A stretch of 64,000 bases of DNA from Blastocladiella emersonii ATCC 22665 (GCA_025594325.1 JANHCV010000002.1:2232001-2296000); one strand, 5' to 3'. Shown: positions 14,423 through 34,897, counted from the stretch's first letter. Numbers and translations are program-made. Notes: generated from the sequence alone by a model not told the origin.

Positions 14423-17400
14423 CTAACCCAGCAAGCTGCGCATGTACACGGGCTTGCGCACCGCGTTCGAGTACCCCTCGTGGAACTTGTACCGGACGGC
14501 AGCGACGCGGAGCTCCGGGTGTCCGCTGACGCGGGCGTTGGCGCGCTCGAGCTGCGTCGCCGTGGGCTCGGGCCGCACGATCGGCCGCCCAAAGAAGTCG
14601 CGCTCGACCTTGCCGTCCTGGCCCGCGAGGATCGCCGCCGCGACGCTGGACTGCGCCTTCTCGCGGACCGTCCCGACCGCGTCGTCGGCGATCTGCTGCT
14701 GCCCGGCGCCCGCGCGGATCGCGCTCGTCTCGAGCTGCGTCGCGATCAGCTGCCGCACGGGGAAGCTCGCGGGCAGGAGCGACTTGATCTTGCCGTTTGC
14801 CATGGCAAGGCCGCAGATGACCTGGATCGGGCTACACGAATGAGAGGGGAAGTCAGCGCGCGCAGTGAGAGAACGCGACGCACGCGCGATCACGTACGGC
14901 TCGAGGCGGAACGTCTGGACCCCGTCGACCGAGTCATGCACGAGCCGGACGTTGAGCCCGTGCAGCGCGCCGACGAGCGCGTCGAATTTGGCGCGCTCGG
15001 CCGCGGGCATGAGCAGCAGGTTGGCGTGGCGCAGGCCGGGCGGCGACAGGATCCGCGCGAGCGGGCCCGCCACGAGGTCCGTGACGAGCGTGCCGGCCGA
15101 GAGCGTCGTGAGCGTGTACCCCTTGCGCGGGTTGGCGTTGCGGGCGAGCGAGTGGAGGATCTGGCGGTGGTCGCGCTGGCGGACAAAGGCGTCGTAGTCC
15201 TGCTTCGGGTACTCGATGCGGCCCGCGGCGCCGCCCGCGTTGCCCGTGAGCCCCGTGCGGAACTGCAGGTGCAGCGCGGCGAGGGTCCACGGCACGTACT
15301 GGTGGATGGCGCCGGCGTTCCCGCTGGTGCGGAACCCGAGCGAGTGCAGCGTGTCAAAGTCGACGAGCGCGTCGAGCGCCTCGCCGTACCGCGCAAAGTC
15401 GTGCGACCGCGCCTGCACCAGGTACTCGTGCAGCCCGACCGCGATCTTGTCCCAGTCGCCGTGCCCGTCAATCGCGTGCGCGAGCCCGGCAATCGACGAT
15501 ATGGAGCCCGGCACGGCGACCGCCGTCTTGGACTTGGCGAACACCTTGGCCGCGAGCTCCTGCGCCGCGGCCGCCGAGAACATGGCGTCCCACAGACTCG
15601 GCAGCGACCGCGACGTGTCCTTGGTCCCGAGCTGGCTGTTCTCGAGCGTCGCCTTGGTGATGATCACGGGTACGCGCTTGGCGCTGCTGCCGCCGGCCGC
15701 GCGCCGATCGCGCACGGCGCTGCGGTGCGCAAACTGCAGCGCGTGGAGGCACGCGCGGATATCGCCCTCGGCGCGGTCGGCGAGCCAGTGCAGCGTCTGG
15801 ATCGACGCGCGGATCCCCTCGCGCTGGCAGATGTGCGTGAGCCGGCGCACCAGGACCGCGTGGGTATCTGGCTTCCACACCTGCACGATGCGCGCGATCT
15901 GGCGCAGTGGCCGCAGCGCCGGCGCGTACAGGTCGTTGCAGATGCAGATGATCGGGCGACGCAGCTGCGAGCCGTCCTGCTCCTTGTTGTTGCGGCGCTG
16001 CGCTACTGGCGCGCCGTCCACGTCCATATCCGTGATGCCCGGCCGCGGCTTGGGCTTGCCGCCGCGGTGCCGCGTCGCCGACTCGGCCATCTGGACGAGC
16101 TGCTTGATGAGCCCGTTGGCGTCGTTTCCGCCCGCGCCGCCGCCGCCGCCGCCTCCCGTGGCGCCGTCAATCTCGTCGAGGACCACGAGCCGCGGCCGCT
16201 TGCTGACCTTGCCGTTGACAATGGTGGTGCCGCCCATGGCGTTCTCGATGCGGTCCTGGACCGACCGCGCGGTGCGGTCGTCGGACGCGTTGATCTCGGT
16301 GACGTCGTACCCGGCCTGGCGCGCAATGATATGAACGAGGGTCGACTTGCCCAGGCCCGGCGGGCCCGCGAGCAGGAGCACCTTCTTGGCAGGGCGGTGC
16401 ATCGGGTCGCCGGGCGTGAGCTCGACGAGCGTCGACGACGGCTGGTACACGGGGGTGCCGTCGTCGTGCAGGTCCGTCTCGTCGCCGATCCCGTCGCTGA
16501 TCCCGAACCGCGACGTCTCTTTCGCGACCTGCTGCGCCGGAGGCTTCTTGCCGAACACGCACGGGTCCCACGCGCGCACCCACGCGAGCACCGCCCGCGC
16601 CACGGCCTCGTCGCCGATCAGGTCGAGGTACGTCCGCGGACGGTACCGGTCGACCCACAGGTCCTGCTCGGGCCGCGCGAGCGGGAGACGCAGCGGGTCG
16701 TGGCGCAGCGCGTCGTCGTCGGCGTCGGGCATCGACTCGCATATCTCGCGGATGATCTCGCCCACGTCCTCCTGCAGCAGCGCGCCGGCCGCCCCGCGCT
16801 GCGTCTCGTCGGCCAGCCGGTGCGGCTCGCGGCGCGGAAAGAAGAGTTCGGTCCCGTCGGCGGTCGTGGCGCGGGCGTATCTGCGCGCGGTCGGCTCGGC
16901 GCGGAACCCGTTGGCGCGCTGGGCCTGCGACGCGGGAGGTGCGCCGTAGAGCGGAGGGCGCGGGGGCGGCAGCTGCGACAGCGGGTCGAGCTCCATGTTG
17001 CCAAGCGACAGCCGGATCGAGTCCTCGGGGCCGAACGAGTCAAAGTCGAGCGCCATGGACTGGCCGACATCCCCAAAAGGTCCGCTGCGTGCGCCGGCCG
17101 CCTGCGTGTCGCGCGGGAGCGTGAACTGGTTTGCTGGGGGTTGCTGCTGCTGGGCCTCCATCATCATGGACTCGCGGATCATCTCCTCCTCGAACGCGAG
17201 CCGCGCCTCGAGCTCGGCGTCGGCGTCGGCGTCGATCCCGTCGTCCATGTCAAAGTCGAGGTCGTCGTCGGTGAGCGGGAACCCGCCGAACGCTGTACGC
17301 GAGGCTGGTGCCGGCGGGAGGGACGGCGGGGCGAGGGTGGGCGGCTTGGGCGCGGCAGCACCTGGAGCGGCGAAGGTACGCGGTTGCCACGACGGGCCGA

Positions 17401-17869
17401 GGTCGGCCGCGGAGACCCGCGAACCGGCCGCCGCGAGCTGCGGGCGCGGGATGGACACGATGGGCTGGCTGCCCGGGAACCCCGTGCCGTCATCGTCGTC
17501 GGACTCGGACTCGTCGTCGGAGATGAGCGCGAACCGCTTCCGCGCGGCCTCGTTGCGCGGCCGGATCGACTGCGACCGCGCATCCTGGTCGGCGATCCGC
17601 GCGGCCGCGTCGCCGTCGAGGGCGGGTGCTGCGGGACCGTTGTCGTCGTCGGCGCTGAGACCGAGGTCGACGCAGGTGCGTTTGGACGGCTCCGCGAAGC
17701 CCGAGAGACCGCTGGGCAGCTCGAACGACGACAGCCGGGTCAGCCCGCCGTCGGTGCCGTCGCGGTCCCCGTCGCCGTCGAGCGCCGACGACGCGGTGCG
17801 CTTGGCCCCCGCGGGCGCGCCGAGTGCACCGACTGCTGGCGGCCGTGCATTCGATTCATTGGACGACAT
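14423..17869 (-). CDS. CTF18: Chromosome transmission fidelity protein 18 (RFC-like clamp loader); probable in-frame 66-nt intron 14897..14832
   Basis: LWVDRYRPRTYLDLIGD, LLLAGPPGLGKSTL, EINASDDRT, LDEIDG, RPIICICNDLYAPALRPLR, C-terminal RDFFGR...YKFHEGYSNAVRKP. Confidence 0.95.
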   Translation of the reverse strand: MSSNESNARPPAVGALGAPAGAKRTASSALDGDGDRDGTDGGLTRLSSFELPSGLSGFAEPSKRTCVDLGLSADDDNGPAAPALDGDAAARIADQDARSQSIRPRNEAARKRFALISDDESESDDDDGTGFPGSQPIVSIPRPQLAAAGSRVSAADLGPSWQPRTFAAPGAAAPKPPTLAPPSLPPAPASRTAFGGFPLTDDDLDFDMDDGIDADADAELEARLAFEEEMIRESMMMEAQQQQPPANQFTLPRDTQAAGARSGPFGDVGQSMALDFDSFGPEDSIRLSLGNMELDPLSQLPPPRPPLYGAPPASQAQRANGFRAEPTARRYARATTADGTELFFPRREPHRLADETQRGAAGALLQEDVGEIIREICESMPDADDDALRHDPLRLPLARPEQDLWVDRYRPRTYLDLIGDEAVARAVLAWVRAWDPCVFGKKPPAQQVAKETSRFGISDGIGDETDLHDDGTPVYQPSSTLVELTPGDPMHRPAKKVLLLAGPPGLGKSTLVHIIARQAGYDVTEINASDDRTARSVQDRIENAMGGTTIVNGKVSKRPRLVVLDEIDGATGGGGGGGAGGNDANGLIKQLVQMAESATRHRGGKPKPRPGITDMDVDGAPVAQRRNNKEQDGSQLRRPIICICNDLYAPALRPLRQIARIVQVWKPDTHAVLVRRLTHICQREGIRASIQTLHWLADRAEGDIRACLHALQFAHRSAVRDRRAAGGSSAKRVPVIITKATLENSQLGTKDTSRSLPSLWDAMFSAAAAQELAAKVFAKSKTAVAVPGSISSIAGLAHAIDGHGDWDKIAVGLHEYLVQARSHDFARYGEALDALVDFDTLHSLGFRTSGNAGAIHQYVPWTLAALHLQFRTGLTGNAGGAAGRIEYPKQDYDAFVRQRDHRQILHSLARNANPRKGYTLTTLSAGTLVTDLVAGPLARILSPPGLRHANLLLMPAAERAKFDALVGALHGLNVRLVHDSVDGVQTFRLEPYVIARASRSLTARADFPSHSCSPIQVICGLAMANGKIKSLLPASFPVRQLIATQLETSAIRAGAGQQQIADDAVGTVREKAQSSVAAAILAGQDGKVERDFFGRPIVRPEPTATQLERANARVSGHPELRVAAVRYKFHEGYSNAVRKPVYMRSLLG

Positions 17870-18025
17870 GGCGAGTGCGCTGTGGTGAGGGTCGACGACG
17901 TCCGCGCGCGCGCCGTTCACTCACCGCCGCTGTGAGACCTGCCGTGAGACCGCCGCCGCGACGCTGACGACGACGTTTCCTCGCACACTGCCCATCATCT
18001 CCCGACTTCCTGCAACGTATCAACG
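17870..18025. promoter_or_regulatory. Short bidirectional promoter between CTF18 and THOC3
   Basis: 156 bp between divergent start codons; two GTGAGAC motifs at about 17932 and 17944. Confidence 0.55.
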
Positions 18026-26108: not shown

Positions 26109-29012
26109 TTAGATGGCGCCGGCCATCTCCTGCGCCTGCACGTCGTGGAACGGCTCGAGGACGGCGCGGAACTCGCCGCGGCGGCCGATGAGCGTGCGCC
26201 GCTCGACCCACGGGACGGCGCCAAAGTCGAGGACCGCGTCGACGAGCGCGTTCACGTCGTGCACCACGCGCACCTCGGAGCGCGACACGAGCTCGACGGC
26301 GACGTCGAACACGGCGGCCTCGGCGCGCTGCGTCACCGTCTTGCGCCCGCCCTGCTTCTTGGCGAGCTCGTCGCCGACGACCGACGTGTGCAGCCCGCCG
26401 AGCAGGTTGCGCATGTCGCGGTTGCGCAGCACCGTGGCCACCGACCCGTGCGCCGTCGCCACCATGGCCTTGATGCGCGTCACCACGCTGCGCGCCGCGT
26501 CCACCTCCTTCTTGTCGCTGATCTCGTCGATCACGACCACGTCGGGCGTGTGGTTCTGGACCGCTTCCAAAAGAACGTGGTGCTGGTCCGCGCGCACCGC
26601 CACCTGCATGCGCCGCGCCTCGCCGAGCGACGCGTGCGGCGTGTCGCCCGGCCCGCCGAGCTCGTTGGACGTGTCGACGACGAGCACGTGGTGGTGCCCG
26701 CCCGCCGGCCCGCTGAGCCGCGCAACGACGTCGCGCAGCGTGTGCGTCTTGCCCGTGCCCGGCTTGCCCAGCAGCAGCAGCGACCGCTCGCCCGTGTGCA
26801 CCACGTCGCCCAGCAGCTGCGCGAGCCCCGTGCCCGGTGCGGCCGCGCGCCCGACGCGGATCGTGACGCCGACCGCGTGGCCCTCGCGGTTCGGGATCCA
26901 CGAGATGCGGTGCAGCTGCCCGTCGATGCCGCCGCGCCGGTCCGACGAGAAGGTGCGCCCGATGACGACCGACTCGATCATGTCCTCGTCGACCGGGCCG
27001 AGCTCCGTCAGGTCCACCGTCGGGTTCGAGGTGGTGCCAAAGAAGCGCAGGCGCGCGGGGCGGCCGACGTCGAGCGAGATCTCGTTGAGCGTGTCGACCG
27101 CGTCCGGGATCGCGTAGATGGCGTCGCGCACGGGCTCGGGCAGCAGCGCCAGCAGGTCGTGCACCTCCTGCCGCGTCGTCTCGAGCCACTCGGCGTACTT
27201 TGGGGAAGCCGACACGGCGGGGTCGAGCGCCGTGGTGCCGCCGGCGGGGAGCGCGGCGGCCTCGGCCTCGGTCATGGTGTGCCACTGCACCACCTTGTTC
27301 CCCGTCGCGGACTCGACGACGAACCGCGCGAGGACGGGGACGCGCGGCGGCAGCGGGCCCGTCGACCACTCGGCAACCTGCACCCGCTCGAGCCCGGCGA
27401 CGCGCGACTTGGCGCGGCGCACCCATTTCGCGAGCGCCGCCAGCTTGTCCTCAAGGACCGCCGCGGCCGCCGGCAGCTGGTCGACCGACAGCACGGCGTG
27501 CCGCTCGAGCACGTCCTGCGGCAGCCCGAGCTCCCAGTAGTCGACGCACCCGTCCATGGTGCGAAGCGCGGCCTCGACGACGGCCGCGTCCGCATCAACG
27601 GGGCAGCGGCACGCAGCGAGGACCGTGTTCACGTCGGCGGCGACGGCGGTCTCGGCGCGCGAAGTTGGGGCGCGCACACCAGCAAACTCGCGGCGCAGCC
27701 CCGCACACGCGGCGTGCAGCGGCTCGGGCAGCGCGTCGAGCTGGCCAAACAGGGTCTCGGCATCGCGCGTGGCCTCGACCCACTCGCGGAACAGGATCTG
27801 CGTGTCGACGAGCGGCGCCCCGGCGAGCTGGATGTCGAGATGGTGGTCGAGCGCGTCCACAAGATCGCGGCCGCCGTGCACGACCAGCTCCCACGGGGCG
27901 TCCTGGTTCTCCAGGACCGACTTGATGGCGACGCGCGCCGCCTCGCGGTCCGCGGCCGTCGTCGAGCGCGTGTCGAGGAGTACGGCGATCGGCGTGTTCG
28001 TCTTGTTTGGCGTAAACGCGAGCACGAGCGCTGCGAGATCGCCGTGGTTGGCGCGCGACAGGTCGCCCTGCGCGCCAAGCGCGATCCGGGTCGGCGCGGC
28101 GGCCGCGAGCAGCGTATCGAGCTGCTTGGCGAGCACGGGCGACTCGAACGACACGAGCGTGTACCGCGGCAGGTACCTCGGCGCCAGCGTGTTGAGGACA
28201 GGCCGCAGCGAGCACGCCGCGGACACGACGGGGACCGGCGGCGCGGGCTTGGCGGCGCGGGCGATGGGCGCGCCCGAGAAGGATGGCGAGACGGGCACCG
28301 ACGAGGACGGCGTCGGGAGCGCGTTGCCGACCGGCGTCCACGGGATGTCGAACTCGTCGAGCTCGGGCGCGTCGGGCGGGAGCGCCGGGTCGTCGGGCGT
28401 CGCCGAGCGGAACGGCGAGCCGGTGTAGGGCACCGAGACGTCGTCGGCGTCGGGGTAGGTCGGGAACACGCGCTTGGTGACGCGCGAGCGGTCCTTGTGC
28501 ACGGTGAAGGCGTAGGTCTTGGGCGGCTGCAGCTTGGTGAAGAAGAGGTGCAGCGGGACCTCCTTGCACAGCTTGACCCAGTCAATGTAGTTGGCCTTGA
28601 CGGCCGGGTGGTGCTGGAAGTCCTTGAACAGCTGGAAGTTGTTGCGCGGGCCGTTCTTGTACAGGTGCAGGTACAGGTCGATGATGAGCACCTTGATCGA
28701 CTTGTACGCGTCGTCGTTGTCGTCGGTCGCGGGCGCGCGCAGCAGGCGGTACTGCTTCTTGCCTTTAGGGCCAATGTCGACGTGGATGATGTCGGGGAAC
28801 AGGTCGGCGAGGCCCGACGGCGCGCCCGCGACGTGGAACGCCGTATGGTGGATGAGCTCGTCCGAGACGTCCTTGCCCGTGACGGTCTGGTCGGGCTCGA
28901 GCGCGGCCAGCGCGGCCACCTTGCCGAGCAGGTCGGCCAGGTGCATGGTCGCCGGGACCACGGCGGCCGGGTTCAGCTTGATAGCGCTGCTACTGTTGTG
29001 GTTGGTGGCCAT
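26109..29012 (-). CDS. Tandem winged-helix/LOTUS-like + dead DEDD (Egl/EXD1-like) exonuclease + Ycf45/SpoIIIAA-like P-loop ATPase, paralog 1 (967 aa)
   Basis: IALGAQGDLSR..GDL, LVVHGGRDLVDAL, LVDTQILF, YW..LP; GIDGQLHRIS, TIRVGRA, GKPGTGKT, VVDTSNELGG, EAVQNHTPDVVVIDEI, ATAHG. Confidence 0.85.
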   Translation of the reverse strand: MATNHNSSSAIKLNPAAVVPATMHLADLLGKVAALAALEPDQTVTGKDVSDELIHHTAFHVAGAPSGLADLFPDIIHVDIGPKGKKQYRLLRAPATDDNDDAYKSIKVLIIDLYLHLYKNGPRNNFQLFKDFQHHPAVKANYIDWVKLCKEVPLHLFFTKLQPPKTYAFTVHKDRSRVTKRVFPTYPDADDVSVPYTGSPFRSATPDDPALPPDAPELDEFDIPWTPVGNALPTPSSSVPVSPSFSGAPIARAAKPAPPVPVVSAACSLRPVLNTLAPRYLPRYTLVSFESPVLAKQLDTLLAAAAPTRIALGAQGDLSRANHGDLAALVLAFTPNKTNTPIAVLLDTRSTTAADREAARVAIKSVLENQDAPWELVVHGGRDLVDALDHHLDIQLAGAPLVDTQILFREWVEATRDAETLFGQLDALPEPLHAACAGLRREFAGVRAPTSRAETAVAADVNTVLAACRCPVDADAAVVEAALRTMDGCVDYWELGLPQDVLERHAVLSVDQLPAAAAVLEDKLAALAKWVRRAKSRVAGLERVQVAEWSTGPLPPRVPVLARFVVESATGNKVVQWHTMTEAEAAALPAGGTTALDPAVSASPKYAEWLETTRQEVHDLLALLPEPVRDAIYAIPDAVDTLNEISLDVGRPARLRFFGTTSNPTVDLTELGPVDEDMIESVVIGRTFSSDRRGGIDGQLHRISWIPNREGHAVGVTIRVGRAAAPGTGLAQLLGDVVHTGERSLLLLGKPGTGKTHTLRDVVARLSGPAGGHHHVLVVDTSNELGGPGDTPHASLGEARRMQVAVRADQHHVLLEAVQNHTPDVVVIDEISDKKEVDAARSVVTRIKAMVATAHGSVATVLRNRDMRNLLGGLHTSVVGDELAKKQGGRKTVTQRAEAAVFDVAVELVSRSEVRVVHDVNALVDAVLDFGAVPWVERRTLIGRRGEFRAVLEPFHDVQAQEMAGAI

Positions 29013-32000
29013 CCTCGAAGTATGTCCTTAGGGACGAGTATGCTGCATCACTACCGGAGTCGACTGGCAGAATGGCAAGGAGCGCAAACGGGTTCGGGTC
29101 GCGAACGGCGAAGGGGGTCGGTCGGCGACTCACGCGCATCATCGTGCGTGTCGAGGACGCGTGACGGCACGGCACACGCGTCCAGCCGGTGTCCAGGCAC
29201 CGCAGCGATCGGCGCACATGAACTGCACCGATCTGCGGGCTGGTCGCGGCCTCGGTGACATGCCCTCGGCTATGCTGCTACCGTATCACCCAAACTTGGT
29301 GCAACGTCACCCGTGCGAGCGCTGGTTCTGTTAACCACAAACTTGGGGCGGAATCGTTGCGCAGCGGGCGTCAGCTGCGTCAGCTGCTGGACAGGCTTCG
29401 TGGTTCGGTCCCGCGAGCCCTCGGACGTCGTCTCGCATGGGCTATCGGTCAACGTCTGAGCTCGCCGTGGCCGCGAGCCATGGACCTCAGTGGCCACTGA
29501 GAGAGAGAGTCATGCTGGCTGCGTGAGTTGGAGCTCCCTCGAGGGCGCGTTCAGCCCTTCAGGAGAACGACCGGACGGCACGACCCGAGAACCCTGAGAT
29601 GAAGCCGTCGACAGTGTCTCCCAAACTAGCCTGCACCTTTGCGCCAAGTGTCACGCTGCTGTCGAGCTCTAGGGCTCGTGGCAGTGGACACGATCGCAGC
29701 GCCGGCCGACCGACGACACAGGGAGCAGGCGGGCTTGAAACCTCGATGCGCCTGCGCGTTCATCCTCGCTCCCCGTAATACTTGCGCTCGAGCCCAAGCA
29801 TTATCATAGTGAAACCCCCACCACGCCATGAAAGCAAAAGCTATTCCCGCGACTATGCACGTCGCCGACCTGCTGACCAAGGTCGTCGCCTTGGCCGCCT
29901 CGTCGGACGACCTGACGTGCTCGGCCAAGGATGTCTCGGCCGCCTACATCGGCCACCCGGCCTTCCACATCATCGGCGGGACGGCCGGGCTCGCCGAGCT
30001 GTTCCCGGACATCCTCGCGCTGGTCCCCGGATCTAAGAAGGTGTACCAGCTGCTCCGCACCCCGGCGGCCGTTGAGGAGGACCCGGCGTTCAAGTCGCCG
30101 CACGTCATCCTCATCGACCTCTACGTCCACCTGTACAAGAACGGCCCGCGCAAGACCTTCGAGCTGTACAAGGACTTTGCCGGCCACCCGGCCCTCAAGG
30201 CCAACTACATCTACTGGGTCGCCCTGACCAAGGTCGCCTACGACCACTTCTCGGTCATCAACCCCGCCGCGGGTGCGGGCAAGTCGGACGAGTCGTCGCC
30301 CAAGCCCAAGCCCGGTAAGGGCAAGGACCAGGTCCCCTACACCATCTGTGCCAACAAGCTCAAGTACACGAAGCGCATCCTTGGCGCGCCCGCCGCCTCA
30401 CCTCAGCCGGCGGCAGCACCATCGTCGCCGACGCCTGCCCCGGCCCCGAAGACCCCGTCCAAGTCGGCTGCCGCTGCTGCCGGCGCCGCGTGGACCCCGT
30501 CGCCTACGGCCACGCCCGCCCGCGCTTCCACCCCGACACCCGCACCTGCTTCCGCTCGCGCCAAGAGCCCGGCGCCGACCACCGCGTCTGCCCCGTCAAC
30601 CCCGAGTGGAGCACCGGTGCCGCGCAAGAAGCCGGCCGCAGCCGCGACCTCTTCTTCGCCCGCCATCCCGTGGGCGCCCGACGCGCCGGCGCTCCCGACC
30701 CCGACCGCGTCGGCCTCGCCCTCCCCGTCGTTCCCGCCGCCGCCGCCGCCTCCCACTCGCTCCCACCACAAACCCGCCAGGTCGGACACGAGCCAGTACA
30801 ACCCCAAGACGTTCTACAACACGGACGGCTCCACGCGGTGCGAGGCGCTGACGTTCGACGGCACCCCGCTCCACGAGGTCCTCGCCGGGATCCTCGACGT
30901 TTCCGCGCCGACCCGGATCGCGGTCGGCGCGCAGGGCGACCTGTCGCGCGCGAGCTACGGCGATCTCGCGGCGCTGGTGCTCGCCTTCACAGCGACGACG
31001 GTCGGCAGTGCGACGACGCCGATCGCCGTACTCCTCGACACGCGCTCGACGACGGCCGCGGACCGCGAGGCGGCGCGCGTCGCCATCAAGTCGGTCCTGG
31101 AGAACCAGGACGCCCCGTGGGAGCTGGTCGTGCACGGCGGCCGCGATCTTGTGGACGCGCTCGACCACCATCTCGACATCCAGCTCGCCGGGGCGCCGCT
31201 CGTCGACACGCAGATCCTGTTCCGCGAGTGGGTCGAGGCCACGCGCGATGCCGAGACCCTGTTTGGCCAGCTCGACGCGCTGCCCGAGCCGCTGCACGCC
31301 GCGTGTGCGGGGCTGCGCCGCGAGTTTGCTGGTGTGCGCGCCCCAACTTCGCGCGCCGAGACCGCCGTCGCCGCCGACGTGAACACGGTCCTCGCTGCGT
31401 GCCGCTGCCCCGTTGATGCGGACGCGGCCGTCGTCGAGGCCGCGCTTCGCACCATGGACGGGTGCGTCGACTACTGGGAGCTCGGGCTGCCGCAGGACGT
31501 GCTCGAGCGGCACGCCGTGCTGTCGGTCGACCAGCTGCCGGCGGCCGCGGCGGTCCTTGAGGACAAGCTGGCGGCGCTCGCGAAATGGGTGCGCCGCGCC
31601 AAGTCGCGCGTCGCCGGGCTCGAGCGGGTGCAGGTTGCCGAGTGGTCGACGGGCCCGCTGCCGCCGCGCGTCCCCGTCCTCGCGCGGTTCGTCGTCGAGT
31701 CCGCGACGGGGAACAAGGTGGTGCAGTGGCACACCATGACCGAGGCCGAGGCCGCCGCGCTCCCCGCCGGCGGCACCACGGCGCTCGACCCCGCCGTGTC
31801 GGCTTCCCCAAAGTACGCCGAGTGGCTCGAGACGACGCGGCAGGAGGTGCACGACCTGCTGGCGCTGCTGCCCGAGCCCGTGCGCGACGCCATCTACGCG
31901 ATCCCGGACGCGGTCGACACGCTCAACGAGATCTCGCTCGACGTCGGCCGCCCCGCGCGCCTGCGCTTCTTTGGCACCACCTCGAACCCGACGGTGGACC

Positions 32001-32898
32001 TGACGGAGCTCGGCCCGGTCGACGAGGACATGATCGAGTCGGTCGTCATCGGGCGCACCTTCTCGTCGGACCGGCGCGGCGGCATCGACGGGCAGCTGCA
32101 CCGCATCTCGTGGATCCCGAACCGCGAGGGCCACGCGGTCGGCGTCACGATCCGCGTCGGGCGCGCGGCCGCACCGGGCACGGGGCTCGCGCAGCTGCTG
32201 GGCGACGTGGTGCACACGGGCGAGCGGTCGCTGCTGCTGCTGGGCAAGCCGGGCACGGGCAAGACGCACACGCTGCGCGACGTCGTTGCGCGGCTCAGCG
32301 GGCCGGCGGGCGGGCACCACCACGTGCTCGTCGTCGACACGTCCAACGAGCTCGGCGGGCCGGGCGACACGCCGCACGCGTCGCTCGGCGAGGCGCGGCG
32401 CATGCAGGTGGCGGTGCGCGCGGACCAGCACCACGTTCTTTTGGAAGCGGTCCAGAACCACACGCCCGACGTGGTCGTGATCGACGAGATCAGCGACAAG
32501 AAGGAGGTGGACGCGGCGCGCAGCGTGGTGACGCGCATCAAGGCCATGGTGGCGACGGCGCACGGGTCGGTGGCCACGGTGCTGCGCAACCGCGACATGC
32601 GCAACCTGCTCGGCGGGCTGCACACGTCGGTCGTCGGCGACGAGCTCGCCAAGAAGCAGGGCGGGCGCAAGACGGTGACGCAGCGCGCCGAGGCCGCCGT
32701 GTTCGACGTCGCCGTCGAGCTCGTGTCGCGCTCCGAGGTGCGCGTGGTGCACGACGTGAATGCGCTCGTCGACGCGGTCCTCGACTTTGGCGCCGTCCCG
32801 TGGGTCGAGCGGCGCACGCTCATCGGCCGCCGCGGCGAGTTCCGCGCCGTCCTCGAGCCGTTCCACGACGTGCAGGCGCAGGAGATGGCCGGCGCCAT
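26113..32898. repeat. Inverted repeat: arms 26113-27995 and 31016-32898 (1883 bp each) around a 3020-bp spacer
   Basis: Encoded proteins are identical from TPIAVLL to EMAGA. Only one synonymous difference was noticed by eye (AAC/AAT at about 26251/32760); an exact alignment was not run. Confidence 0.92.
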
Positions 32899-32902
32899 GT
32901 GA
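29828..32902 (+). CDS. Winged-helix/LOTUS-like + dead EXD-like + Ycf45-like ATPase, paralog 2 (1024 aa)
   Basis: Same architecture as paralog 1; divergent N-terminus (HPAFHIIGGTAGLAELFPDIL; DLYVHLYKNGPR) and a longer Pro/Ala linker. Confidence 0.85.
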   Translation: MKAKAIPATMHVADLLTKVVALAASSDDLTCSAKDVSAAYIGHPAFHIIGGTAGLAELFPDILALVPGSKKVYQLLRTPAAVEEDPAFKSPHVILIDLYVHLYKNGPRKTFELYKDFAGHPALKANYIYWVALTKVAYDHFSVINPAAGAGKSDESSPKPKPGKGKDQVPYTICANKLKYTKRILGAPAASPQPAAAPSSPTPAPAPKTPSKSAAAAAGAAWTPSPTATPARASTPTPAPASARAKSPAPTTASAPSTPSGAPVPRKKPAAAATSSSPAIPWAPDAPALPTPTASASPSPSFPPPPPPPTRSHHKPARSDTSQYNPKTFYNTDGSTRCEALTFDGTPLHEVLAGILDVSAPTRIAVGAQGDLSRASYGDLAALVLAFTATTVGSATTPIAVLLDTRSTTAADREAARVAIKSVLENQDAPWELVVHGGRDLVDALDHHLDIQLAGAPLVDTQILFREWVEATRDAETLFGQLDALPEPLHAACAGLRREFAGVRAPTSRAETAVAADVNTVLAACRCPVDADAAVVEAALRTMDGCVDYWELGLPQDVLERHAVLSVDQLPAAAAVLEDKLAALAKWVRRAKSRVAGLERVQVAEWSTGPLPPRVPVLARFVVESATGNKVVQWHTMTEAEAAALPAGGTTALDPAVSASPKYAEWLETTRQEVHDLLALLPEPVRDAIYAIPDAVDTLNEISLDVGRPARLRFFGTTSNPTVDLTELGPVDEDMIESVVIGRTFSSDRRGGIDGQLHRISWIPNREGHAVGVTIRVGRAAAPGTGLAQLLGDVVHTGERSLLLLGKPGTGKTHTLRDVVARLSGPAGGHHHVLVVDTSNELGGPGDTPHASLGEARRMQVAVRADQHHVLLEAVQNHTPDVVVIDEISDKKEVDAARSVVTRIKAMVATAHGSVATVLRNRDMRNLLGGLHTSVVGDELAKKQGGRKTVTQRAEAAVFDVAVELVSRSEVRVVHDVNALVDAVLDFGAVPWVERRTLIGRRGEFRAVLEPFHDVQAQEMAGAM

Positions 32903-33223
32903 GGAAAGACCAAGGGATTCGAGTAATTGTATCATCACAATGTATGAAGAGTGTTTACCCCGAGCAAACTAGGAATGTTCAGCGCTTCTCGGGCGAGGCA
33001 GCTCTCAGCCACGCTGCCTGTTGGAGCAGCAGGAGTCACAGGCGCGCGCCAGCGGAGGCACTTGGCCCACGGAGCAAACGAGGAGGTCAGGAGTCGCACG
33101 GCAGATCGACGCGCGACGCCACTCGCGTGAGCGCGCTCATCCGAGTAACCCCGACCTTCGCCTCGCCTTCGCGCGCTCTCGACCCGCTCTCCCGCCCCTC
33201 TCTGACAGACCCGCCACATTGCA

Positions 33224-34897
33224 ATGTACAAGATCCCCGCGGTGCTCCACCTCGCGGACCTGGTGATCCAGGTCGCGTACCAGCTGGCGTCGCAGCAGCA
33301 GCCGCCGTGGCTCGACCCGACGTTCCCTTCCGCGTACTTGACGGCCGCGTTCGGCACGCACCCCGCCTTCGCGCTGATCGGCGGTCCCGCGGGGCTAGCC
33401 GCCACGTTCCCGGACATCCTCGCAGCGGTGGCGTACCCCGACGAGGTGCGGTACCAGCTGCTGCGCGTGCCGGGCCCGGTGCACGAGGAGCCGGCGTTCA
33501 AGCACCCGCGCGCGATCGCCGTCGACCTGTACCTGCACCTGCTCGAGCACGGCGAGCGCAAGTCGTTCCAGCTCGACCGCGATTTCGAGGACCACCCGAG
33601 TTACCGCGCGGGGAACAAGTACTGGGTACGCGTGTCGCGGCTCGACCGACGGGTGGGGGAGGAGCCCCGCTGACAGATGTAACGGGGCGTGTAGACGCCC
33701 GTGTCGCGGATCGCCTTCGACCACGTGTACTGCATCAACCCGATGGTGCGCACGGGCAAGAAGAACCCCAACTACCACGTGACCAAGAACCCCAAGCACG
33801 CGTACAAGTACGGCGCGCGCGTTACCATGCGCAACACGGCCATGTTTGATCCCGCTCCGACCGCGCCCGCAACGCCCGCAGTGCCCGCGGATGCACCCGT
33901 CGCCTCGGTTCCGGCCGCTGTGGTCGCACCCGAGATGGCGTCCCCGCCCGTCGATGCCGCACACGCTGTCGGGGACGCTCAGGAACCGGTTGCGCCGCCC
34001 GCGCCGGTCCCTGCACCGCCGCCTGCCCCAGCCGGCTCGACGGCGACCGCGGCCGCGTTCGCCGCGCCATACGCCCCGAAACCGATCTACAGCGGCACGC
34101 GCGGGCAGGGCAAGCTGCGTTGCCAGGTGCTCTCGTTCAGCGGCACCTCGCTCGCCGCCGACCTCGCGTCGGTCCTGGCCGCTGCGCAGCCCACCTTCAT
34201 CGCGGTCGGCGTGCAGGGCGACCTGTCAGCCGTGACGCTGTCGTTCAAGCCAACCACGGAGCTCAGCACGACGGTCCCCGTGGCGCTGCTTCTCGACACG
34301 CGCGCGTCGGCGACGCCCGCAGACCGCGCGGCGGCGCGCGCCGCCATCAAGTCGGTCCTCGAAGCAGCCGACGCGCCGTGAGAGATTGTCGTGCATGGCG
34401 GGCGCGACGTGGTGCGCTCGCTCGACGCGCACCTCGACATCCAGCTCGCCGGCGCGCCGCTCGTCGACACGCAGGTCCTGTTTCGGCAGTGGGTCGAGGC
34501 CACGCGCGACGCCGAGCACCTGGTCGCGCAACTGGACTCGCTCCCCGAACCGCTGCACGCCGCGTGTGCGGGCCTGCGGGCCAAGTTCGCCGCGGTCCGC
34601 GCGCCCGGTACGTCTCAGGCGGGCGCGACCAGCGTGAACACGGTCCTCGCGGCGTGCTGCCGGCCGGGGAACCCGGACGCGGCGGCGATCCGGACCGCGC
34701 TCGCCGCGGTGCCCGACGGGCAGTACGTCGATTACTGGGACCTCGCGTTGCCGGAAGAAGTGCTCGAGCGGCACGCCGTGTTCGCGGTCGACCAGCTGCC
34801 CACCGCGGCCGCGGTGATCGAGGAGAAGCTTGCGGGGATCGCGCGGTGGGTCGGACGCGCCAAGTCGCGGATCGCGGCGATCGTGGACGCCGAGTAG
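33224..34897 (+). pseudogene. Paralog 3: winged-helix + dead EXD only, no ATPase; intron 33626-33694; in-frame TGA at 34379-34381
   Basis: Spliced NKYW|TPVSRIAFDH aligns with YWVALTKVAYDH. DAP*EIVVHGG corresponds to DAPWELVVHGG in the paralogs. Ends IVDAE-TAG. Confidence 0.8.

Follow-up and report, generated by a model that had tools for sequence, protein, structure and literature searches.

What kind of protein do three neighbouring, homologous reading frames of the fungus Blastocladiella emersonii ATCC 22665 encode, and would it cut nucleic acid or bind it? The frames (copies 1, 2 and 3) were recovered by open reading frame (ORF) calling within positions 26109-34897 of a 64,000-nt stretch of contig JANHCV010000002.1 (assembly GCA_025594325.1), which as a whole is termed the window and to which all coordinates refer. 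An initial annotation of this DNA had described a cluster of Egalitarian (Egl)- and EXD1-like pseudonucleases fused to a Ycf45-type ATPase, and its ORFs and coordinates proved correct. Judged by their sequences, the window proteins are a dead-nuclease, winged-helix-bearing, multi-copy derivative of an exonuclease-Ycf45 ATPase family. The idea that the three genes are distinct parts of one system did not hold, the genes being paralogs of which one is broken. As the best explanation, we consider it modestly probable that the locus is a lineage-specific paralog cluster of an uncharacterised eukaryotic family, joining a PF01612-type exonuclease to a Ycf45/SpoIIIAA ATPase of the PilT-like secretion-ATPase class, in which a dead RNA-recognition module is coupled to the ATPase.

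Catalytic motifs were read from a 34-sequence alignment with bona fide PF01612 proteins and an accompanying residue table. The alignment consensus is IAxDxEG at ExoI, VVHDxRxDxxAL at ExoII and YAAxDVxQL at ExoIII. The corresponding motifs are IAL/VGAQG, VVHGGRDLVDAL and HAVLSVDQL in copies 1 and 2 and IAVGVQG, VVHGGRDVVRSL and HAVFAVDQL in copy 3, with ExoII of the window copies aligned as HGGRDLVDAL. All five DEDDy positions are replaced (by G, Q, L, H and S in copies 1 and 2 and by G, Q, V, H and A in copy 3) and the LSR..G.L scaffold is kept, as first claimed. The window copies lack D, E, D, Y and D, and two metal ions can therefore not be coordinated. The alignment thus confirms the middle domain as a DEDDy homolog but a predicted pseudoenzyme. 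A long helical insertion separates ExoII from ExoIII.

An AlphaFold2 model of the middle domain (predicted local distance difference test (pLDDT) 88, predicted template modelling score 0.80) has the RNase H-like alpha/beta fold of DEDDy/DnaQ-like exonucleases. Its top Foldseek match in the PDB was the exonuclease-homology domain (ExoHD) of Egl (E 1e-6, probability 1.0), followed by EXD1, Trypanosoma brucei and Escherichia coli RNase D, Nibbler, Rrp6 and NrnC, and the best Swiss-Prot model matches were EXD1 orthologs (E 6e-7, template modelling (TM) score 0.52). VIA-align gave Z 17.9 to Egl residues 529-730 (root-mean-square deviation (rmsd) 3.4 over 193 residues) and Z ~16 to RNase D, the Klenow exonuclease, NrnC, EXD1 and also the Pol theta and apicoplast Pol exonuclease domains, the lead of Egl over other DEDDy domains in these structure searches being a small margin. 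Model and searches together bear out the earlier assignment of a DnaQ-like domain nearest to Egl and EXD1.

Scanned against Pfam and NCBIfam, the N-terminal and middle domains of the window proteins themselves returned no match, and the relatives recovered by word-indexed homolog searches all came from Blastocladiomycota (Allomyces javanicus, A. macrogynus, Catenaria anguillulae and a second B. emersonii pair). The A. javanicus ortholog (P0003) keeps ALDVEG, VVHDGRADADAL and YAAYDVDQL and matches PF01612 (E 6e-5). The set grew to 87 proteins in an exhaustive search with a profile of the N-terminal and middle parts, and PF01612 was detected in 72 of 83 proteins scanned, 80 of the 83 being from that search. 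When a blastoclad-only profile was compared with PDB sequences, T. brucei RNase D (4.5e-7) ranked ahead of Egl (1.7e-5), with Werner exonuclease reaching only E 0.1 in the sequence-profile comparison. The sequence-nearest relatives, T. brucei RNase D, Egl, EXD1, Rrp6, NrnC and Mut-7, are RNA-acting proteins.

Loss of the catalytic residues does not appear to have released the domain from constraint. When copy 3 is compared with copies 1 and 2, nonsynonymous divergence (dN) in the exonuclease-like domain is 0.20 and synonymous divergence (dS) 0.53, giving dN/dS 0.38 (201 codons; a difference of ~4.6 standard errors). The catalytic substitutions are common to copies 1-3, and the degenerate ExoI motif GAQGDLS is conserved though it lies outside the converted repeat arm described below. 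The dead domain therefore stayed constrained after catalysis was lost, and these substitution patterns show purifying selection on it.

In copies 1 and 2, the last ~370 residues match PF19568 (Spore_III_AA) at 32.9 bits (cutoff 27). They also match TIGR02858 (E 1e-10), at 41.5 bits against an equivalog cutoff of 281.3, and the ATPase is therefore not a SpoIIIAA ortholog. Both Walker motifs (A, GKPGTGKT; B, VVVIDEI) fall in invariant columns of the family alignment, as do the TAHG box and the N-domain signature SSDRRGGIDGQLHRISW (DRRGGIDGxLHRIS in the family). No match to R3H (PF01424) was obtained for the window copies in Pfam and NCBIfam scans, and R3H is not universal among Ycf45-type family members. 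An intact Ycf45/SpoIIIAA-type ATPase without R3H, as originally proposed, accords with the PF19568 match, the invariant Walker motifs and the absence of PF01424. A bacterial Ycf45 homolog that bears R3H (P0011) has 43% identity to the ATPase, whose nearest solved sequences are, weakly, PilT-type retraction ATPases. In the literature, Ycf45, a gene conserved in plastids and cyanobacteria, appears almost only in plastid gene lists.

The N-terminal region was modelled from a seven-sequence alignment containing blastoclads only (pLDDT 80-90 for residues 20-150). For module 1 (residues 24-90), the modelled order of elements is a1-b1-a2-(short helix)-a3-b2-b3, which supports a winged helix; module 2 (residues 106-158) is helical and basic (isoelectric point (pI) 9.1), and its putative wing is absent from the model. 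Two related modules had been proposed: the first is modelled as a winged helix, and mutual relatedness was not established (hhalign E 0.01, probability 4%). In a structural scan, the neighbours of module 1 were the TDRD5 LOTUS domain (3s93; Z 7.6), a TFIIIC winged helix (7.4), Egl ED (7.1), the Marf1 (6.7) and TDRD7 (6.4) LOTUS domains and many generic winged helices (~6-7.4). TDRD5 3s93 superposed at an rmsd of 2.6, with 73 of 81 residues aligned, and for a LOTUS-type winged helix Foldseek gave E 0.2 at a probability of 0.99. Foldseek searches of the N-terminal model against the PDB and Swiss-Prot returned generic winged helices only (E 0.02-0.4), and an ESM Atlas shape search returned TFIIIC, PORR, Rpc34 and OST-HTH clusters (TM 0.3-0.4). 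In the N-terminus, neither PF12872 (LOTUS/OST-HTH; E up to 5) nor PF23713 (WH_Egal) matched, the N-terminal profile matched no PDB sequence, hhalign against a genuine WH_Egal domain gave E 0.31, and a word-indexed search with the N-terminal 200 residues returned the query alone. The proposed LOTUS/Egl-type N-terminus therefore stands as a winged helix with TDRD5, Marf1, TDRD7 and Egl ED among its top neighbours but lacks sequence support (Pfam, hhalign), so that a LOTUS or Egl-ED identity of module 1 is a reasonable lead from modelling and is not established. Eight N-terminal positions are invariant across three genera (L68, P73, L90, R92, D112, F132, H135 and P136). We found nothing on LOTUS domains in Blastocladiomycota or on SpoIIIAA combined with R3H in the searchable literature, and nothing useful on SPD1, the plant homolog.

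The two-domain core extends well beyond the window. Fusions of a DEDDy-intact PF01612 domain with the ATPase include P0022, P0032, P0040, P0046 and P0025, among them a Chytridiales sp. JEL0842 protein (P0022; PF01612 1e-17, PF19568 1e-14), a EukProt transcriptome sequence (P0032) and several environmental eukaryotic contigs. Within a capped list of candidates, few named relatives came back when the chytrid fusion was the query. Synchytrium microbalum P0053, which lies outside the catalytic residue table, carries both PF01612 and ATPase domains, and an oomycete-rich ESM Atlas cluster with PF01612 and PF19568 has similarity 0.93 to copy 2 and 0.98 to P0022. No published description of an exonuclease-Ycf45 fusion was found in the searchable literature; the novelty claimed for the fusion is upheld to that extent, but the fusion is not unique to this locus, being present in chytrids, oomycetes and environmental eukaryotes. 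A 2009 list assigned cyanobacterial ancestry to a YCF45 gene in Phytophthora ramorum and Naegleria (PMC3087521), which may or may not correspond to the fusion. This distribution shows a putative ancestral form in chytrids, oomycetes and uncultured eukaryotes that keeps the DEDDy residues, with the predicted N-terminal winged-helix region as a blastoclad addition. Members of the same exonuclease subfamily elsewhere (P0054, P0088, P0066 and others) are joined to MOV10-like helicases, KH domains, CCCH zinc fingers or a retroelement integrase, and P0066 combines its exonuclease domain with a genuine WH_Egal domain.

In a tree of the ATPase domain, all blastoclad members formed one clade (100/99) in which paralogs group by species. 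Dead-exonuclease paralogs occur in Catenaria and Allomyces as well, the latter genus also retaining DEDDy-intact copies. One of these, P0003, branches among Allomyces paralogs that are inactivated, and catalysis has therefore apparently been lost several times; the tree shows such repeated loss in blastoclads with the proviso that gene conversion can distort it. B. emersonii itself encodes, on another contig, a 330-aa stand-alone family member with intact D-E-D-Y-D (P0043, H9P43_006440), a possible active partner of the dead paralogs. Allomyces macrogynus GG745340.1 (L001:10001-23561) carries three consecutive same-strand genes of 1162, 1387 and >1402 aa, the first two of which (AMAG_07563 and AMAG_07562) were confirmed as family members. 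Paralog clustering therefore recurs in another genus.

Copies 1 and 2 share a perfect inverted repeat whose arms are 100% complementary and confined to the 3' coding halves of the two genes. The inner boundary is sharp and falls inside the exonuclease-like domain, where identity drops abruptly to ~75%; the outer boundary lies one codon before the two stops. In an independent k-mer assembly, read-contig word depth was 222 in the arms vs 111-124 in spacer and flank, and one spacer unitig connects to the arm at both ends. An assembly artefact was rejected as the cause of the repeat on the grounds of this doubled depth and the spacer unitig joining both arms. Two identical 3' halves really exist, and the simplest reading of their sequences is that a very recent gene conversion homogenised them. 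At position 32761 (mirror 26250), the assembly reads T but the read contigs of run X1 read C, with the two-fold depth seen in both arms; this synonymous difference (AAT to AAC) is likely to be a consensus error or a polymorphism common to both arms. A comparable pattern was found in the second B. emersonii pair, P0009 and P0010 (H9P43_005512 and H9P43_005518), which lie 32 kb apart in direct orientation and are without the exonuclease-like domain: their N-terminal winged-helix parts are ~50% identical and their C-terminal ~460 aa ~100% identical. P0010 has an in-frame TAG for the conserved Trp of LHRISW in the ATPase N-domain, the second Trp-to-stop case in the family, and the P0009 gene model has the same gap.

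Copy 3 is not an intact gene, its frame being interrupted by four stops. Three of them lie inside a 69-nt insert that is plausibly an intron, because it has GT and AG ends and an internal CTGAC and its excision brings copy 3 back into exact colinearity with copies 1 and 2. The fourth is a TGA in the conserved Trp codon of DAPWELVVHGG, at which independent read contigs, built from three sequencing runs of the source sample, had zero differences. The deposited 524-aa model could be reproduced only by adding a 30-nt intron (34355-34384) that skips the TGA, which looks like an annotation workaround and is implausible as an intron. Through the same TGG-to-TGA substitution, GTGGGA becomes GTGAGA, which resembles a 5' splice site more closely. 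Copy 3 stops directly after the exonuclease-like domain with no space for an ATPase before the next gene, and its sequence suggests that it is probably a pseudogene or yields a truncated product. Reassignment of stop codons was rejected as an explanation of the Trp-to-stop changes: copies 1, 2 and 3 end in TAA, TGA and TAG, and copies 1 and 2 have TGG at the site of the copy 3 TGA. In Blastocladiella britannica, three ATPase-less proteins (P0018, P0020 and P0021; D-D-D-x-D) terminate, like copy 3, directly behind the exonuclease-like domain; that assembly is fragmented and truncation at contig ends is possible.

The cluster (Table 1) has ~70% G+C and a G+C content at third codon positions (GC3) of 0.90-0.95, and lies inside a G+C-rich block (14001-40000; ~68-73%, flanks 59-63%). 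At such GC3, very long ORFs appear on both strands, so ORF length alone is weak evidence; antisense ORFs overlapping the real genes at 26145-29258 (+; 1037 aa) and 30596-32938 (-; 780 aa) are by-products of GC3 >0.9. Over 97% of the region from the domain to the end, copy 1 is 46% identical to its Allomyces homolog P0003. No large internal palindrome was found in the spacer between the divergent copies 1 and 2. Some 8 kb from the cluster, a 1165-aa ORF at 14423-17920 (-) encodes an AAA+ domain with an RFC1-like lid (a clamp-loader subunit of the Rad17/RFC1/Ctf18 type); the other flanking ORFs in the window had no informative domains.

Table 1. Features of the paralog cluster in the 64,000-nt window, with the related gene P0010 from another contig
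Feature	Position	Strand	Details
Copy 1 (P0001, 967 aa)	26109-29012	-	Stop TAA; winged helix-turn-helix (wHTH) modules, linker, predicted dead exonuclease-homology domain and Ycf45/SpoIIIAA ATPase; ORF and annotated gene in GCA_025594325.1
Copy 1 N-terminal winged-helix region, residues 20-160	28533-28955	-	AlphaFold2 pLDDT 80-90
Copy 1 N-terminal signature	28788-28850	-	HHTAFHVAGAPSGLADLFPDI
Copy 1 N-terminal signature	28602-28679	-	DLYLHLYKNGPRNNFQLFKDFQHHPA
Copy 1 Pro/Ala/Ser-rich linker, residues 161-284	28161-28532	-	Poorly conserved in alignments; AlphaFold2 pLDDT <50 beyond residue 154
Copy 1 exonuclease-homology domain, residues 285-545	27378-28160	-	ExoI 28065-28085; ExoII 27849-27884; ExoIII 27474-27503
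Copy 1 beta-hairpin bridge (residues 546-600) and ATPase (601-967)	26109-27377	-	DRRGGIDGQLHRISW 26898-26948; Walker A 26745-26768; Walker B 26520-26540
Perfect inverted repeat, left arm, 1888 nt	26113-28000	.	Copy 1 codons ~338-966
Spacer between divergent copies 1 and 2, 815 bp	29013-29827	.	Presumed bidirectional promoter region
Copy 2 (ORF 1024 aa)	29828-32902	+	Architecture as copy 1; stop TGA; annotated P0002 is 1015 aa, from 29855
Copy 2 ExoI	30917-30937	+	
Copy 2 ExoII	31127-31162	+	
Copy 2 ExoIII	31508-31537	+	
Copy 2 Walker A	32243-32266	+	
Copy 2 Walker B	32471-32491	+	
Perfect inverted repeat, right arm, 1888 nt	31011-32898	.	Copy 2 codons ~395-1023
Copy 3	33224-34897	+	wHTH modules and predicted dead exonuclease-homology domain, without ATPase; ExoI 34199-34219; ExoII 34388-34423; ExoIII 34769-34798; stop TAG; annotated product 524 aa
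Candidate 69-nt intron of copy 3	33626-33694	+	GT..CTGAC..AG; three in-frame stops
TGA in conserved Trp codon of copy 3	34379-34381	+	DAPWELVVHGG; fourth stop
P0010	JANHCV010000006.1, retrieved stretch L002:10001-12193		Partner P0009 (L003)

Among known systems, Drosophila Egl (PDB 9rvy-9rwb) offers a close parallel, with N-terminal LOTUS-like winged helices, a flexible low-complexity linker and an exonuclease-homology domain whose catalytic site is unused (PMC13186709). Among solved structures it matches the middle domain best, by the blastoclad-only profile it ranks second, its ED is in the top three for module 1, and modelling supports a predicted wHTH and ExoHD layout that parallels Egl (PMC13186709). 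Egl retains its putative catalytic residues, which are dispensable for RNA binding and in vivo function (PMC13186709), whereas all five are replaced in the window copies. Its LOTUS-like domains and ExoHD bind double-stranded RNA without catalysis and clamp an RNA stem-loop ~15 angstroms from the unused catalytic site (PMC13186709). Egl has three modules vs two here and a tetrahelical XAD that is missing here, the window proteins have no PF23713 match, and Egl is an animal protein without the Ycf45 ATPase found at the C-terminus of the fungal ones. EXD1, a piRNA biogenesis factor (PDB 5fiq/5fis), likewise uses an inactive DEDDy-fold domain as an RNA-binding or partner module, but has an Lsm-like N-terminus, neither winged helices nor ATPase, and only 14-19% identity. 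RNase D, Rrp6, Mut-7 and NrnC share the fold and profile homology, and the DEDDy-intact relatives P0003, P0012 and P0022 look, from their residues, like working RNase D-like enzymes; these known nucleases are active, whereas the window copies lack the catalytic residues and HRDC domains. Cyanobacterial and plastid Ycf45 and Bacillus SpoIIIAA share the whole ATPase core, including DRRGGIDGxLHRIS, Walker A and B and the TAHG box, and in bacterial R3H fusions, as here, the ATPase is tied to a nucleic-acid-binding module. The window proteins differ in having no R3H or PTPase-like domain, an N-terminal nucleic-acid module of exonuclease type, and a nuclear gene in a plastid-less fungus. Chytrid, oomycete and protist exonuclease-Ycf45 fusions (e.g. 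KAJ3411085.1 and XP_031025123.1) have the same two-domain core in equal order, with an ATPase 40% identical, but their tabulated members keep D-E-D-Y-D and are without the blastoclad winged-helix N-terminus.

Taken together, the window architecture probably binds rather than cuts nucleic acid. Following the Egl precedent, the winged helices and the dead exonuclease domain could act jointly as a non-catalytic nucleic-acid recognition unit, whose most likely target would be RNA, because the sequence-nearest relatives all act on RNA. We infer that RNA binding may be coupled to the ATPase: this PilT-like, presumably oligomeric enzyme could link binding to ATP-dependent remodelling, translocation or switching of the bound ribonucleoprotein, and in catalytically intact relatives the same ATPase might feed, drive or gate a working exonuclease. 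The RNA-surveillance or defence function suggested at the outset is pure conjecture.

Several observations weigh against this account of a dead RNA-recognition module coupled to an ATPase. Behind ExoIII, the model shows a single long helix (229-260) and then a beta-hairpin (276-295), not the tetrahelical XAD of Egl, and the copy 1 exonuclease-homology domain is acidic (pI 5.0), giving no hint of strong general nucleic-acid affinity. The LOTUS/Egl-WH likeness is structural only, its Z of 7-7.6 being commonly reached by winged helices of any kind, and the sequence tests fail; the winged-helix region also evolves fast (dN/dS 0.74-1.0, which is not significantly lower than 1). Ycf45-type ATPases themselves have no assigned biochemical function. 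Long open frames, including antisense ORFs >1000 aa, arise by chance at this GC3. Finally, the family is visibly shedding members in B. emersonii: nonsense codons occur in copy 3 and in P0010, with the shared gene-model gap in P0009, and parts of the family are therefore decaying.

This decay could be taken further, with the exonuclease-like and winged-helix parts functionless, a redundant, dispensable family drifting to pseudogenes, gene conversion doing no more than spread sequence, and at most the ATPase in use. The five lost catalytic residues, the three lesions just named, the N-terminal dN/dS and the chance expectation of long ORFs would all fit, yet we regard wholesale decay as improbable: dN/dS in the dead domain is 0.38 (~4.6 standard errors) after the shared catalytic loss, the ExoI motif is kept in copies 1-3, the eight N-terminal residues are invariant across three genera and the ATPase motifs across the family, and dead-exonuclease paralogs persist in Catenaria and Allomyces. 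Fast N-terminal evolution could instead mark a conflict or immunity-type family under birth-and-death evolution, like that of other immune genes, with the ATPase as engine and the N-terminal halves as sensors of viruses or transposons. Such a family would account for the lineage-specific expansion and clustering (three copies here, the A. macrogynus tandem genes and the second B. emersonii pair), the homogenised 3' and divergent 5' halves in two independent pairs, the pseudogenes, the high N-terminal dN/dS, the patchy eukaryotic distribution and the fusion of exonuclease relatives among the profile matches to MOV10-like helicases, KH domains and NACHT or STAND NTPases. We nevertheless give it a low probability, since defence-associated domains or effectors were not found in the flanks of the cluster, dN/dS does not exceed 1 and positive selection is not demonstrated, the sharp 100% tract resembles one recent conversion event rather than a selected mosaic, and chytrid members occur once per species among the search returns.

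A role directed at DNA is more doubtful still. Here, the winged helices would bind double-stranded DNA, the ATPase would act in repair, replication or segregation, and the exonuclease domain would derive from a DNA proofreading or processing nuclease. Most winged-helix neighbours do bind DNA (TFIIIC, MarR, Fox, Cdt1 and MukE), the fold fits the exonuclease domains of Klenow, Pol theta and apicoplast Pol equally well (Z ~16), and the R3H domains partnered with Ycf45 in bacteria can bind single-stranded DNA as well as RNA. The nearest proteins by sequence are nonetheless RNA-acting, with Werner exonuclease at E 0.1, the top structural matches are Egl and EXD1, and locally the winged helix is matched best by RNA-associated domains (LOTUS and Egl ED). 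Very improbable, in our judgement, is a pseudoenzyme regulator, in which a catalytically competent paralog would partner the dead domain and be recruited or gated by it under ATPase control. P0043, stand-alone with intact D-E-D-Y-D in B. emersonii, would be a candidate for the competent partner, and EXD1, a top structural match, is the dimeric inactive exonuclease-like partner in the PET complex; P0043 is encoded on another contig, however. We retain the reading of a lineage-specific cluster that couples a dead RNA-recognition module to a Ycf45-type ATPase.

Whatever its function, the locus represents concerted evolution of half a gene, within a gene palindrome, in a fungus. The family offers a natural series for the origin of a pseudoenzyme, from an active exonuclease-ATPase through a winged-helix active form to repeatedly inactivated and one-domain-less forms. 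The partners of the ATPase are R3H in bacteria, an RNase D-like exonuclease in several eukaryotic lineages and a dead exonuclease with winged helices here; this repeated tie to nucleic-acid modules argues that the ATPase works on nucleic acid and makes the family a set of tractable proteins. On a bolder view, which we consider unlikely as a whole, early-diverging zoosporic fungi would carry an Egl-like RNA-recognition unit hard-wired to a hexameric Ycf45-type ATPase, its motor half kept uniform by gene conversion while its recognition half diversifies, for ATP-driven selection or surveillance of RNA such as stored zoospore mRNAs or selfish RNAs. If true, this would provide a first functional handle on Ycf45 ATPases, and the Egl/EXD1-style reuse of dead exonucleases for RNA recognition would be older than animals or have arisen twice. 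The likeness to Egl and EXD1 may be convergent or ancestral, and either way it informs how RNA-recognition modules are built from exonuclease folds.

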